Assembly (NCBI RefSeq): GCF_006345805.1
Contig: NC_043009.1
Span: 67,828,001 to 67,892,000, forward strand
Reading direction: 5' to 3'
DNA: 64,000 bases
From: Octopus sinensis
Taxonomy: Eukaryota
Shown: positions 44,201 to 59,200 of the stretch, piece after piece
Layout: every line of letters starts with the position of its first letter
Position numbering within the stretch: the first letter of the stretch is position 1
Made by a program: the position numbers and the translations under genes
The notes under the pieces: generated by a model
Databases searched by the model: none
Seen by the model: the letters and a program-made list of their open reading frames with translations, nothing else
What the model was told of the DNA's origin: nothing

Positions 44201-47200
44201 TATATAATGAATGTTATATATATATATATATATATATATATATATACATACTTGTGTTGCGGGTGGTTAAGCATCCGAAGTATAATTCCAAATACATCAC
44301 GGCGTATATACCATTTCGTAGAGTGAGTGATTGGAAAATGATGCAATTAGAAAATGTATTTATTTTGTGACATTCAAAAGATGTATACATGTAGAAAAAA
44401 TACATTAACTCTCGAAGTGAGTTATGATTATAGTGAACATCGACCTAAATACATTGTTCCGAAAGACACGGGTTCAAAAAAGTCAATAACTTTATCACAA
44501 AAAGTAATAATAACGAATTCATCTCTTCATTGTCAAAGAGGATTAAAAGAGCAAAGCACAACCCAAATTTCTTCGGGAACTCAATTTTTGCGCGGAAATC
44601 GGCTCGCATACAGAAATGCACGTCGCTATATATATATATATATATATATATATATATATATATATATATATATAAGTTCAGCAAAATTTAGATTCAGATG
44701 AATATGGTTAAAGGCACCAGAATTTTGTATGGTATTATCCATATAAATCAAATGGGGTGATTATAATCAAAATAATCAAAATAAGTAACAAGTATATCCA
44801 AAGTAGAGTAGTACAATTGTAGCATGAAAATGAAGTAGCATGAAACAATTGTACTACTCTACCATGGATATACTTGTTGCTTATTTTGATTATATATATA
44901 TATACATATATATATATTATATATATACATATATATATATATATATATAATATATATATATATATATATATATATATATATATATATATATATATATATA
45001 TATATATATATATATATAGATTACACGTATAATATATATATTTATATATATTAAGTGAGGGCACTGGCCTTGAGCGTTAGGAGTTTATCACTCGTGAAAG
45101 AGAGAATGTGTGTACATGTATATATGTATGTACTTACGTATATATGTATGTATGTATGTATGTATGTATGTATGTATGTATGTATGTATGTATGTATGTA
45201 TGTATGTATATTACCCACTCATACGCTTGCCAACTGAGGAGCTCCAATAAGCCCCAAACATCCTTTGCTCCCGGAAGTTTACTTGTTATATTTTCCATAT
45301 TTTTCAAAAATTGCATTCGATTTCATCAGAGTTATTTCCACCTTTTTTTATGTTTCCAACTTTTGACTATCCCTAAAATTTCCTCTGCAAACTGCCTGGA
45401 TAATCTCAGATAATCGTTGCTTTTCAATTCAATGCATCACACGTGTGAAACTTCCCCATTGTTTGTTTGCTTTTATATATTTTCTACAGAGTTTGATTGT
45501 AAAAAAAAAACAAAACATTTCGTTTTTATGGCCTTTGTTTCTTCGATAGAAGATTAATATGATTTACGATTTAGTCAATAAAATACAGATGTTCTATTTT
45601 AGTTTTTTCCAGAGTTGTTTCGTCTGCCAAATAACAGCTCACCTTTCATTTCATTTCATTTACATTTCCTTTTTTTTAGATGTGCCAACAGAAGTTAAAG
45701 TTCATATTTATATTAGCAGTTTCGACTCCATTCGTGAATCGGCTATGGTAAGCTGACATTCAATTCAATTATTATTTATTACACTCAGTTTTACTTTTTA
45801 TTAAGGATAAACAGATACGATTTCTCGATAAATAAAAACTTTGATCCTTATTAATTCGCGCATTATTCAGCGTCAAAAAAAGCAGAACCCTAACTTATAT
45901 GAGAAATATATGCATGTGCATGTACATATGCGTGTATATTCGGGTATATATGCACGCGTGTATGTATGTATGTATGTGTGTGTGTCTGTGTGTCTGTCTG
46001 TCTGGCTATATGTATATATGCATGTATGTCATTATTCAGTTTATTTCAAAATTTCTTACCAATAGAGAAAGAACTGGTTTCTAACCTAGATTTAAGGCTC
46101 CTTCATTGGAATTTCAACATCAACAGCAGGGTATTTTTGTATGTATGTATGTATGTATGTATGTATGTATTTATGCATGTATGTATGTATGTATGTATGT
46201 ATGTATGTTATGTATGTATGTATGTATGTATGTATGTATGTATGTGTTGGTTTGCCAGTTATATTCGTGCTTTACTTTTTTGTTTCATTTATTCTCATTT
46301 TTAGTTTTTATCAACAATTTTAACATATCAGCGAATGATATATTCTCCTTTAATATTCCGCCAAGAGGCGAGCAGGCAGAAACGTTAGCACGCCGGGCGA
46401 AATACTCAGCGGTTATTTCGTCTGTCTTTATGTCACTTTGCCTTTCATCCTTTCGTGGTAGAGAAATTAAGTACCAGTTGTGTACTGGGGTCGATCTAAT
46501 CGACTGCCCCCCTTCCCAAAATTTTCGAGAAGAAAGGGATATATTCTCCTACAATATTCCGCCAAGAGGCGATCTGTCAGAAATCTTAGCACGGGTTATC
46601 TCGTCTGTCTTTACGTTCTGAGTTCAAATTCCGCCGAGGTTGAATTTGCCTTTCATCGTTTCGGGATCGATAAATTAAGTACCAGTTGCGTACTGGGGTC
46701 GATCTAATCGACTGACCCCCTCCCCCAATATTTCGGGCCTTGTGCCTAAAGTAGAAAAGAATATTCCGCCAAGATCGAGTTTGCCTTTCACTCTTTTGTG
46801 ATCGATAAAATAAGTACCAGTCACGCTCTGGGCTCTATATAATCGATTAACCCCTTCCACCCTAAATTGCTGCTCTTGTGCCAAAAATATATTTTCCTTC
46901 ATTGTTCACGACTTCTGACCAACAATCCAATAACTTGTTCCATGTCATTGTTGAACAAATCGCCTCGCAGACTGTTGCAAAGCGACTGTAAAAAGTAATA
47001 ATCTGAAGGTGCCATATCAGAAGAATAGGATGAGTGTGATAGAGCATCTATATTCGTGCTCTTGGATAGCATTTTTGGTCACATTGGCGACGTGGGGGCT
47101 GGAGTTTGTCTCTTTTATTCTGGCCGCGTGGCTTCCATACACCGAGAGACGGACGATGGCGCATCTCGAGAGCATCCCATGTGCTGGACCAACTTCCTAA

Positions 47201-56200: not shown

Positions 56201-59200
56201 GACGCCGTGTATCAGTGACGTGGTTGATTAATAATTATGAACAACGGGACCTCGACTGGAAAGTCTATGATGAAGCCAATATAGTTTTTAAGCCTTTCGC
56301 TGTGGAACTTTATTTATTAATTATTTAATCACGCCTTCAACAAACGCAAAGTTTGAAATTCATTTTAGCTTTCGCGTTTAAGCTCTGGCTCGCGTCTGAT
56401 CTAAATAGCTATTTGCTAAATGCTATTTTAGTTGATAGAGCAAAATCAGGGTGTGCCTATCCACTGACGAGGGGTCCACATGCCATGAAACAAACCAAGA
56501 CAATCTCCTGTATTTTTTGTATACCGAGACAAAAACAACTCTTCGTATATGTTGCAAATTTAACTACTTAAAACTTAGTTTAGATTGTCTAATACACGCT
56601 AACCTGAGGAAAAGCATATATTAATGATTTAATCATGCCGCCGAAGAAGGTACAGAATGCAAATTAATTTTACCATTACAAGTAACTTCTAGTCTGTGTT
56701 CGATTTAAAAGTGAATTTTCTGTAATTTCTTCTCGTCGGTGGAAGAAAGAGGAGGTACATGTCCCTTGATGGGTGGTTGATGAAACTCGTCAGTATAATC
56801 TCTTTTTTCCGTACGAAGATGTGCTCGTATCTTTATAAATTTGCAAAATGAGTGTTTGTATGTATATACACACGTATGTGTAAGTTAATGTATATTTACA
56901 CACACACAAATGTTTGTATGTATCTGTTAAAACGAGATGTCAGTGTTATTTTCAATCTTGCGTGATTTAGACGACAGTTTATTCGCCACACCCTGCATAT
57001 ACACCTGCACAAACATGTATGAAATATATATATTTATATACGCAGACAGGATGTATAATTATGTATAATTAATTGTCTATACACTTGCATATAAAAAGAT
57101 AAAAATACACATAAACTTGCCATGTGAAACATTAATACAATATAAAATACAGCTACGTATGATACATACATCCATAAACATACACACTGAGAGACCAATG
57201 TGTGTGAATATGTATAGATATGTGTTTATATTTATGAATATATATGTAACTACATATAAACATACATACACGACCACACATACTCACATGCTTAGATATA
57301 ATTATTTCCTATACACACACTCAAATACGCTCCTTTCTTCTTTTATTTCTTCTCTCTACAGAAAACAATTTTACCTGCATCCAAGCCGACATTTACCTTA
57401 ATCGGAAGTTTGAATTTTTCCTACTCCACGTATTTATCCCTAGCACTTTGATTGTTGTCATTTCTTGGGTATCCTTCTGGTTACCAATTGATGCTGTTCC
57501 CGCCAGAATAGCACTGGGTAGTACAACCGTTCTAACGATGATCACGCAACGTCAGAGCACAGCCATATCTCTTCCTCCAGTAAGTTACATCAAAGCCATC
57601 GATGTGTGGACAGTATCGTGTTTGGTATTCGTATTCGCGGCATTACTAGAGTACGCTTTGGTCAGCATCTACTCGAGACGAGAAGTAAAACGGATTATGA
57701 TAAAACTTGTACCTTCTAAGGAAACAAAGGGAAGTTTTATCAAATCGAAATCAGTGAGTATTCCCTTTTCACATATTTACTGCTTAAATATTTGAAAGGC
57801 GGCGAAGAGCTGGCAGAATCGTTAGCACGCCGGGCGAAATGCGTAGCCGTATTTCGTCTGCCGTTACGTTCTGAGTTCAAATTCCGCCGAGGTCGACTTT
57901 GCCTTTCATCCTTTCGGGGTCGATAAATTAAGTACCAGTTACTCACTGGGGTCGGTCGATTTAAACGACTTAATCCGTTTGTCTGTCCTTGTTTGTCCTC
58001 TCTGTGTTTATCCCCTTGTGGGTAGTAAAGAAAATAGGTATTTACTGCTTAAATATTTGAGCTGATAACTCAGCGCGACTGTATGCAAGAGTTTGAATGG
58101 AGTTCGCTCTCATATCGATCCCATGTACTCGGTGTTCAAACGGTGTACTGGTACACTGCTTACTTTGATGTTAGTTGGTTTCGGTGTTTTAAGCACGTGG
58201 TTGAATATATAGAAAATAGTAAAAAGTGAAAAAACTACAGAAGGCTTGTTTTAAAAGGTTAAAAAATATATATTTGAGTCATTATGTCAGAAGAATGTTA
58301 TAAATTTTTTTCATACAATGACATAGTTTTTGAAGAAATGACCGGTTTCGCGTTCAGCTTTTCAAATTTCTTCAAAAACTATGTCATTGTATGAAAAAAA
58401 TTTATAACATTCTTCTGATATAATGACTCAAATATATATTTTTTAACCTTTTAAAACAAGCCTTCTGTAGTTTTTTCCCTTTTTACTATTTTCTATATAT
58501 TCAACCACGTGCTTTCACACACCAACTTTCTCACCTATATATATATATATATATATAACCGGGGATGTCTCTGTACCTGACTAAAGCGGAGTAAGAATCG
58601 ACTTCATCAACAATGAACAAGATGTCCACAACATGAATCTGTCTAATGACTTCAAATTACAACTTTTAGAGCTGTTTTAGAAAGCATTCTGATGTATGTA
58701 CTACGATATGAATGTGTGCATATATGTTTGTGCATGCGTGTGTTTGTGTGTGTGCCTGTATTGCCTATATATATATATATATATATTATAGATATATATA
58801 TATATATATATAGATACAGAGAAAGAGAGAGAGAGAGCGATAGTAAGTTGCGAGTGTCTCATCATGCGAAATAAAAAAATTATGAAAAGATGGAGGAGAG
58901 TGAAGTGATTGTTCGAGTGGTTATAGTTAACCTACTGTTCTGTTATTTCGAATTTCATGTATATAACAAAACCTTGCTTTCAGCAACAATCATCAGATTG
59001 GTAGTGCTCAATCTTTCTCAATCTCTCCCTCTCTCTCTCTCTCTCTCTCACTCTCTCTCTCTCTCTCTCTCTCTCTCTCTCTCTCTCTCTCTCTCTCTCT
59101 CTCTCTCTCTCTCTCTCTCTCTCTCTCTCTCTCTGCTACAGAATATACGATAGTGATGCCAATATCTTACTGGGTGTATGCATGGAAAATAGCGTAAGGG

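Follow-up and report, generated by a model that had tools for sequence, protein, structure and literature searches.

Glycine receptors (GlyRs) hold the glycine carboxylate through hydrogen bonds from R65 and S129 of the complementary subunit, loop-C T204 touches glycine directly, and E157 and S158 make contact through water (PMC6143783). In glutamate-gated chloride channels (GluCls), agonist-binding arginines have been shifted between loops and even between faces, with experimental support (Lynagh 2015, PMC4338433). Here we analysed a stretch of 64,000 nucleotides from Octopus sinensis (the window; assembly GCF_006345805.1, contig NC_043009.1, positions 67,828,001 to 67,892,000 of the forward strand), which carries the gene for a Cys-loop subunit, termed subunit A, with threonine at the R65 position, arginine at the S129 position, lysine at the E157 position and an acidic loop C. 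The gene is already annotated in Octopus sinensis/vulgaris (XP_029644278.1 / CAI9732291.1) under the automatic name 'glycine receptor subunit alpha-1-like' or 'alphaZ1-like'. The best explanation as a whole is a working anion-channel subunit whose pocket has been rewired yet functions, and which responds to a non-canonical agonist; we advance it tentatively, at just under an even chance.

Among the described systems, the vertebrate GlyR alpha subunits (GLRA1-4) gave the best sequence and fold match. They share with subunit A the Cys-loop, the second disulfide in loop C, the equivalents of F159, Y161 and F207, the Pro-Ala-Arg (PAR) filter, 6' Thr, 9' Leu and the M2-M3 motif VSY-KAIDxW, whereas R65, S129, E157, G160, F63, Y202, N203/T204 and K200 are replaced by T, R, K, V, I, F, E/E and G, respectively, so that residues of opposite character now stand where GlyR binds the carboxylate and amine of glycine. 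The Aplysia GluCls (GluClAc1/2; Kehoe 2009) belong to the same mollusc GlyR-like radiation and also lack the loop-D Arg and the loop-B Glu; with Ser at the R65 position and an Arg in loop A (VYFRNEK) they are still glutamate-gated, showing that the agonist Arg can move to another loop in a channel that still gates. They fall in the sister clade, however, and keep S129, whereas subunit A has Ala at the loop-A position and carries its Arg in loop E. Sarcoptes scabiei has a pH-gated chloride channel, SsCl (PMC13065796), which is an anionic pentameric ligand-gated channel without a classical agonist, and its beta6 Arg and the Glu beside loop C (positions matched to ours by offset) pair across the interface only in activated states, but it comes from a distant arthropod lineage and its proposed main sensor is a His/Glu cluster on beta7, beta9 and beta10. 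The cephalopod chemotactile receptors CRT1/CRB1 are likewise a lineage-specific Cys-loop family, in which the canonical determinants for transmitters were lost and new ligands acquired. They are, however, cation channels of the nicotinic type, and their families are large and evolve fast, whereas subunit A lies in the GABA-A/GlyR anion branch, with three paralogue groups only, its own group (A) being extremely slow.

Fold, pore and agonist pocket of the octopus subunit

The spliced gene model encodes 408 amino acids, whose numbering is used below unless GlyR numbering is stated. Pfam domains PF02931 (E = 1e-41) and PF02932 (E = 1e-25) place the product in the Cys-loop pentameric ligand-gated channel superfamily, and the Cys-loop has the spacing that the superfamily requires (C158-x13-C172). 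HMMER aligned residues 3-278 of the partial product with residues 36-311 of human GlyR alpha1 (E = 8e-88), with two gaps of one residue each, neither of them in a binding loop; identity to vertebrate GlyR alpha was ~46-48%. The AlphaFold2 monomer model (mean predicted local distance difference test score 82) showed a beta-sandwich and four helices, and its best matches among solved structures were GlyR alpha chains (target-normalised TM-score up to 0.87), with GABA-A beta and RDL chains scoring below GlyR in both the sequence and the structure comparison. The model also fitted agonist-bound, open or desensitised GlyR chains (TM 0.84-0.87, root-mean-square deviation ~2.7-3.9 A) better than apo or strychnine-bound chains (0.76-0.78, 4-5 A), a difference that may reflect AlphaFold bias alone.

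The pore and coupling elements were intact, including the Cys-loop, the pre-M1 Arg, the pore motifs and the M2-M3 loop. P269-A270-R271 occupies positions -2' to 0' and corresponds to GlyR P250-A251-R252, there is no -1' Glu, as is typical of the anion branch, and M2 carries 6' Thr and 9' Leu as in GlyR. The second disulfide in loop C was also present, C217...C228 aligning with GlyR C198...C209. Chloride selectivity is predicted from the PAR motif and the GlyR-like M2.

In the alignment with human GlyR alpha1, the agonist pocket differed as follows. In loop D, F63 and R65 are replaced by I82 and T84; in loop E, S129 is replaced by R149, with R131 kept as R151; in loop B, E157 and G160 are replaced by K177 and V180; and in loop C, K200/H201/Y202/N203/T204/G205/K206/F207 correspond to G219/E220/F221/E222/E223/N224/N225/F226. 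The aromatic box is mostly retained (F179, Y181, F221, F226). When the residues diagnostic of each receptor class were compared, the loop-D Arg and loop-E Ser of glycine receptors were found as T84 and R149, and their loop-B Glu and loop-C Thr as K177 and E223. At the four positions that mark ecdysozoan GluCls (the PMC4338433 set), subunit A has Ser at the loop-G position, where nematode AVR-14 has Arg, and T84, R149 and E223 at the other three. The loop-A Arg of lophotrochozoan GluCls (Schistosoma and Aplysia types), to which the alpha-carboxylate of glutamate binds, is Ala (LYFANEK, at the Aplysia GluCl Arg position), and the equivalents of the GABA-A/RDL loop-D Arg and loop-B Glu are T84 and K177. 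For pHCl/SsCl/Alv-a1-pHCl there is no agreed signature; subunit A has a beta6 Arg and loop-C Glu residues, with a provisional correspondence to R122 and E198 of SsCl by numbering offset. The alignment supports the view that the pocket is not a conventional GlyR, GluCl or RDL-type site, since it lacks the Arg of loop D, the Glu of loop B and the Thr of loop C as well as the two 'extra' arginines known from GluCls.

Two compensated swaps describe the pattern better than a scrambling of the pocket would. In the first, R65/S129 became T84/R149, so that a guanidinium and a hydroxyl exchanged strands (beta2 versus beta6); in the second, an acidic loop B (E157) and a basic loop C (K200, K206) became a basic loop B (K177) and an acidic loop C (E220, E222, E223). 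Because residues 129 and 204 both contact the five-atom glycine in GlyR, Arg149 and Glu223 would probably come within salt-bridge reach when loop C is closed. Ordinary glycine binding is unlikely, since the glycine pose would set the carboxylate by Glu223 and the amine by Lys177.

A sequence-only reading of this stretch had drawn attention to the pocket, and the 408-residue model reproduced all of its quoted motifs, its residue numbers for T84, R149, K177 and V180 and its codon positions for T84 and R149. Its by-eye residue equivalences to GlyR alpha1 were the same in the HMMER alignment, whose single-residue gaps lie outside the binding loops only, so misalignment by eye was rejected as a source of the unusual residues. 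Phe and Glu at Y202 and T204, with F207 and the disulfide kept, were likewise recovered (F221, E223, F226 and C217...C228), as were the missing Arg at the GluCl loop-G position (Ser here), the PAR filter within an otherwise GlyR-like M2, and the conclusion that this is no conventional GlyR, GluCl or RDL subunit, the diagnostic residues being missing in the alignment. Its interval of 45680-57378 fits the extracellular-domain exons, but the whole gene runs over 5095-60798 plus an upstream exon. The charge inversion was found as described, whereas the word 'rearranged' suits it less well, as half of the pattern is ancient and mollusc-wide and the whole reads as two compensated swaps.

Placement in a mollusc clade and conservation in cephalopods

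We tabulated pocket residues in the best 120 relatives and built a maximum-likelihood tree of 68 rows (LG+C20; support given as ultrafast bootstrap / SH-aLRT). Mollusc GlyR-like proteins among the 120 were of two kinds (GlyR numbering): one carried R65, L117 and S129, position 157 being mostly E, A or Q, and the other lacked Arg at 65 and carried Met117, R/K129 and, at 157, Gln or in rare cases K, R or E. The mollusc radiation was supported at 100/95, its 'canonical' half, including the Aplysia GluCls, at 99/94, and the loop-E arginine half, with 38 rows found here in molluscs only, at 97/90. None of the sequences in this 38-row clade had Arg at 65, and all save one chiton sequence had R or K at 129. 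Mean loop-C net charge was -2.2 in R/K129 sequences compared to +0.45 in sequences with R65 and S129.

The clade, which includes Lottia LOTGIDRAFT_111366, proteins named 'glycine receptor alpha-2-like' from pectinids, oyster, Haliotis, Gigantopelta and Littorina, and Octopus P0045 and P0048, is monophyletic with the window gene. Its members have in common a non-Arg residue at 65, R/K129, Met117, an acidic loop C, PAR, a small or branched residue at 160 and, in nearly all, a residue other than Glu at 157. Most other members have Gln157, Ala160, a variable residue 65 and a loop C of variable length, whereas the cephalopod groups A, B and C, nested in this half on a long stem (100/100), have Val160, Thr65, Ile63 and Glu-Glu-Asn fixed and Lys157 near-fixed. 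When 5.8 billion proteins were searched with a profile and 1.84 billion representatives were scanned in full with HMMER, the best 120/150 matches contained no clear non-mollusc member of the clade; the only candidates among the matches listed were one unnamed sequence and one amphioxus S65/K129 protein, which we took as an independent origin. Lingula and nemertean relatives carry other residues. Judged from the tree, the move of the Arg from loop D to loop E and the acidic loop C date to the base of the mollusc clade and are not a cephalopod novelty, while Lys in loop B, Val180 and Glu-Glu-Asn in loop C are, as a set, specific to the cephalopod groups.

The 90%-identity cluster around the closest hit contained the O. 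sinensis/vulgaris protein, orthologues from O. bimaculoides (2 residue differences) and Argonauta hians, and a dozen spliced transcript contigs (1.6-1.9 kb). The pocket was the same in 14/14 group A sequences (I/T/M/H/V/R/R/K/S/F/V/Y and G-(E/D)-F-E-E-N-N-F), residue 220 (E or D) being its sole variation. A transcript orthologue with 94% protein identity and 77% DNA identity gave a nonsynonymous divergence (dN) of 0.047, with 88% of synonymous sites different; synonymous saturation at so low a dN indicates very strong purifying selection. Spliced transcripts of orthologues were present in several public runs, and the 94%-identical ones (SRR27666058) branched outside Octopus plus Argonauta. Each of the three groups splits into an Octopus/Argonauta branch and a second branch, and these parallel splits in groups B and C suggest that the transcripts come from a squid or cuttlefish. 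Branches were much shorter in group A than in the other two groups.

Groups A, B and C are mutually ~57-66% identical overall and were found in cephalopods only, apparently on both sides of the split between octopuses and squid/cuttlefish. Group B includes Sepia pharaonis, Argonauta and O. bimaculoides, and group C O. bimaculoides and O. sinensis. We fixed 25 pocket positions in advance and compared them with 154 aligned columns of the extracellular domain. The results showed that 17/25 pocket positions were invariant across A, B and C, compared to 64/154 columns (hypergeometric P = 0.0035), and that the principal and complementary faces were both fixed. Ten of the 17 invariant positions differ from GlyR (I63, T65, Y99, M117, H119, R129, V160, E203, E204 and N205 in GlyR numbering), and Lys stood at 157 in every cephalopod A, B or C sequence but one older O. 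bimaculoides prediction.

Exons of the paralogues elsewhere in the genome were 98-100% identical to Octopus sinensis and O. vulgaris proteins. The group C locus, whose protein is XP_036364398.1, lies on the same chromosome and strand, ~240 kb downstream (68129539-68180051), and its transmembrane exon is 99% identical to O. bimaculoides XP_052828513.1. Its pocket is the same, and its M2 has Ala-Ala-Arg in place of Pro-Ala-Arg, plus several other changes; GABA-A beta subunits likewise have Ala-Ala-Arg. In Argonauta a single contig carries genes A and C, whose O. vulgaris accession numbers are neighbours, and further members of the loop-E-Arg clade were seen on the same chromosome at 34.8-37.3 Mb. 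Group B was found in this assembly on the short unplaced contig C1183 (2087-2476). The only O. sinensis entry in its cluster is a 167-residue fragment named 'glutamate-gated chloride channel-like', and the O. bimaculoides model XP_052824041.1 lacks the exon from loop E to loop B; with such gaps in annotation the family would escape automated surveys.

Candidate gating mechanism and rival explanations

The window carries most of an intact, expressed gene, and in the mechanism that we propose its product, subunit A, would be an anion-selective subunit of a pentameric ligand-gated channel. The carboxylate-clamping arginine would have moved from beta2 (R65, now T84) to the neighbouring beta6 (S129, now R149) while loop C turned acidic, and later, in the cephalopod groups, the loop-B acid E157 would have become Lys177 and the loop-C contacts Glu222-Glu223-Asn224. 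Because the new residues stand on both faces in A, B and C, we infer that the three combine among themselves into homomers or heteromers, in which Lys177 and Glu222/223 would face Thr84 and Arg149 of the adjacent subunit. As the gating step, loop C would shut onto Arg149, with Glu223 taking the place usually held by the glycine carboxylate. The stimulus would be a small agonist of a non-canonical kind rather than glycine, GABA or glutamate bound in the usual pose, and by stabilising or replacing the Glu223-Arg149 ion pair it would open the GlyR-like pore and let chloride pass. In a further reading, A/B/C would form a cephalopod inhibitory receptor for a transmitter or modulator new to Cys-loop channels, or their own Lys177 and Glu223 side chains would fill the positions of the agonist amine and carboxylate and make the channel proton- or ion-gated; we regard this reading, both forms taken together, as rather doubtful.

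Several points weigh against this mechanism. The class of ligand is a guess, and the Glu223-Arg149 contact and the co-assembly of A, B and C are drawn from a monomer alignment and published GlyR contacts. In essence, the tree shows a single R65/S129 swap, at the root of one clade, which leaves the 'compensatory' nature of the swap putative. The conservation of the pocket also fits a proton or ion sensor that has no organic agonist, and the taxon of the 94%-identical transcripts was read from tree position only. A ligand-gated channel (LGC) screen in octopus (2025 preprint) covered 41 channels and 18 ligands and reports only the cation channel DopC1, gated by dopamine, and the anion channel AChRB1, gated by ACh, and it does not state whether this gene was among those tried.

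In the literature searched, no published function was found for any member of the clade, and no description of the clade, of its arginine relocation or of the cephalopod A/B/C group; searches that included the accession likewise returned no functional study of XP_029644278.1. The possibility that the receptor has already been deorphanised was rejected, as the LGC preprint and its supplements contained no clade member and accession searches gave no paper. A motif search of a portion of the preprint's alignment file gave no clade member in that portion, and none was in a December 2025 list of deorphanised Cys-loop channels. The sequence-only reading had called the channel an orphan, which holds for published function in the literature searched; the protein does not stand alone, however, being an annotated RefSeq gene with cephalopod orthologues, two paralogue groups and a mollusc clade around it.

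The main alternative is a proton-sensitive latch between loop C and beta6, in which the acidic loop C (E220, E222, E223) and the Arg149 of the neighbouring subunit would act as a titratable element gated by protons or divalent ions, or the channel would be tonically active, all with no organic agonist; we consider it unlikely. A numbering offset of 7, anchored at SsCl H208 against the zinc-site His equivalent of GlyR, which we take to be H215, and at the 9' Leu (Leu254 in SsCl, presumably L261 in GlyR), would match SsCl R122 to GlyR S129 (R149) and E198 to G205 (N224, next after E223), a provisional equivalence that comes from offset and not from alignment. In SsCl, Glu198 (beta10) and Arg122 (beta6) form an ion pair between subunits when the channel is open or desensitised, and pH50 is shifted in R122A, but the authors placed the main pH sensor at the H206/E146 cluster and found no significant effect of E198A (PMC13065796). 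An acidic loop C and a beta6 Arg are common to the whole mollusc clade, and proton-gated anionic relatives in annelids and insects appear in the December 2025 list, both of which suit the latch; the aromatic box of small-molecule sites, kept and invariant, does not.

A classical amino-acid receptor for glycine, beta-alanine, taurine, GABA, glutamate or aspartate, with its Arg merely one strand over at R149, seems to us improbable to a similar degree. R65 and S129 each touch the glycine carboxylate, so an Arg at 129 is a plausible substitute for R65. Relocated arginines support glutamate gating in other lineages and an engineered loop-A Arg restores gating (PMC4338433), the Aplysia GluCls work without R65, and most of the aromatic box remains (F179, Y181, F221, F226). 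Lys177 could even supply a second positive charge for a dicarboxylic agonist, in which case recognition of glutamate or aspartate would have arisen independently once more. However, Glu223 at the T204 position sets a carboxylate beside the site of the agonist carboxylate and Lys177 stands at the E157 position, where the amine is water-coordinated, so that both ends of the pose are electrostatically disfavoured; moreover, the loop-G and loop-A arginines of known GluCls are missing, and F63 and G160 have become Ile and Val.

An accessory subunit without an agonist site, which would modulate heteromers of the canonical octopus GlyR-like subunits, has little to recommend it. The canonical determinants are gone from both faces, and many Cys-loop subunits are silent as homomers, for example octopus DopC2 and AChRB2/3. 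Both faces are nevertheless invariant across three groups only ~57-66% identical, beyond the rest of the extracellular domain, whereas drift would be expected of a non-binding face and is seen at position 65 and in loop C in the rest of the mollusc clade, and the matching new residues on the two faces suggest that A, B and C meet. The option of a non-binding modulatory subunit, raised in the sequence-only reading, is disfavoured on these grounds. A decaying or misassembled gene whose odd residues are noise is scarcely credible, as nothing but those residues speaks for it, and the open frame, canonical splice sites, spliced transcripts, dN far below the synonymous divergence, intact motifs, the same protein in the O. 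vulgaris assembly and a near-identical one in O. bimaculoides speak against it. Private substitutions, sequencing error and a pseudogene were ruled out by the same low dN and by conservation in orthologues and paralogues, the pocket being invariant throughout group A and kept in the paralogues.

The brains of cephalopods and of vertebrates arose independently, and little of the fast inhibitory chemistry of cephalopods has been mapped. Subunit A is among the most conserved members of the family (94% protein identity at saturated synonymous divergence) yet has none of the residues by which glycine, GABA or glutamate are known to be held, which points to a further inhibitory ligand or stimulus in cephalopods and makes the gene a good target for deorphanisation. 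It offers a natural experiment in which an agonist site is rebuilt by shifting charges, extending the idea of the relocated arginine from GluCls, and it draws attention to an uncharacterised clade, found here in molluscs only, that is auto-labelled 'glycine receptor alpha-like'. If the channel proved to be an ordinary amino-acid receptor, the loop-D arginine, usually deemed a hallmark, would be dispensable; if the A/B/C reading is true, cephalopod nervous systems would have a new fast inhibitory route built on a pocket architecture from the mollusc clade.

Gene structure and repeats around the exons

The joined gene model has 8 exons in the window on the + strand, with an open frame of 408 codons from 5118 to 60798 and canonical AG/GT borders at every exon (Table 1); inside the window the gene covers 5095-60798 (at least 56 kb). 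Five pieces of the extracellular-domain region were taken from stop-to-stop frames on the + strand (45.6-57.8 kb), and the three outer exons were added by tblastn with the closest full-length relative: that of the signal peptide at ~5.1 kb, a short one at ~19.4 kb and that of M4 at ~60.6 kb. In public RNA assemblies, contigs of spliced transcripts (1.6-1.9 kb) were colinear with the model and free of gaps at every exon junction. The product equals XP_029644278.1 / CAI9732291.1 except that the database entry is longer by 12 residues at the N-terminus. A further 5' coding exon outside the window carries the RefSeq start codon (MYGK) and is placed ~28 kb upstream of 5095 from the span of the gene in the O. 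vulgaris assembly (83.9 kb); this exon had no match anywhere within the 64-kb window. There are accordingly two candidate translation starts, the upstream MYGK and M(ERYY) at 5118. In residues 40-46, encoded by the short second exon, the Octopus sequence reads GYDSGISP, against YDNRISP in the transcript orthologues and in both paralogue groups, so that Gly replaces a widely conserved Arg, a change found here in Octopus only.

Table 1. Exons and pocket codons of the subunit A gene, in window coordinates
Feature	Position	Strand	Basis or remark
Exon 1 of window (RefSeq exon 2); signal peptide; model ATG at 5118	5095-5209	+	tblastn with orthologous transcript product; AG acceptor, GT donor; identical to XP_029644278.1 residues 5-43
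Exon, N-terminal helix segment	19401-19465	+	tblastn; AG/GT borders
Exon, beta1 and loop G; no Arg at GluCl loop-G position	45680-45747	+	
Exon, loop D (I82, T84), loop A (LYFANEK), loop E (M137, H139, V147, R149, R151)	47949-48175	+	
Thr84 codon ACG, GlyR R65 position (loop-D carboxylate-binding Arg)	47973-47975	+	HMMER alignment; invariant in cephalopod groups A, B, C
Arg149 codon CGT, GlyR S129 position (loop E, strand beta6)	48168-48170	+	HMMER alignment
Exon, Cys-loop (C158-C172) and start of loop B (V-I-K177-S178)	49567-49649	+	
Lys177 codon AAA, GlyR E157 position (loop B)	49643-49645	+	HMMER alignment
Exon, rest of loop B (F179, V180, Y181), loop F, first half of loop C (C217-T-G-E220-F221-E222-E)	55778-55909	+	
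Val180 codon	55780-55782	+	
Exon, end of loop C (E223, N224, N225, F226, T, C228), pre-M1, M1, M2, M2-M3 loop, M3, start of intracellular loop	57362-57753	+	Pfam PF02932
P269-A270-R271 in M2; 9' Leu is Leu280	57499-57507	+	
Last exon, end of intracellular loop, M4, stop TGA (60796-60798)	60631-60798	+	C-terminus identical to XP_029644278.1

Exon 5 (49567-49649), which encodes the Cys-loop and K177, is flanked by a 210-nucleotide inverted repeat (49236-49445 and 50377-50586, 92% complementary), directly followed by a near-perfect palindrome (50589-50787 / 50789-50987, 199-nucleotide arms, 98%). Together they look like a foldback insertion or one resembling a miniature inverted-repeat transposable element, and the repeat arms could form intronic double-stranded RNA around exon 5, with effects on back-splicing, exon skipping or ADAR binding. 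Structure-guided RNA editing of K177 (AAA to 'GAA') was considered and rejected, as exon 5 and the downstream intron folded no better than shuffled sequences (z = +0.83).

A unit of ~233 bp resembling a short interspersed element (SINE) is present in 2.6 tandem copies at 48259-48869, and similar copies lie near 46.3-46.7, 53.5-53.7, 55.2-55.5 and 57.8-58.0 kb; translated frames in several introns suggest further SINE-like copies in both orientations. The introns are rich in (TGTA)n, (AT)n, (GA)n and CT-rich microsatellites. GC skew was strongly negative at 8001-10000 (-0.40) and 20001-22000 (-0.20), these regions being long low-complexity tracts within the first large intron with repetitive Ser/Leu- or Glu/Arg-rich frames.

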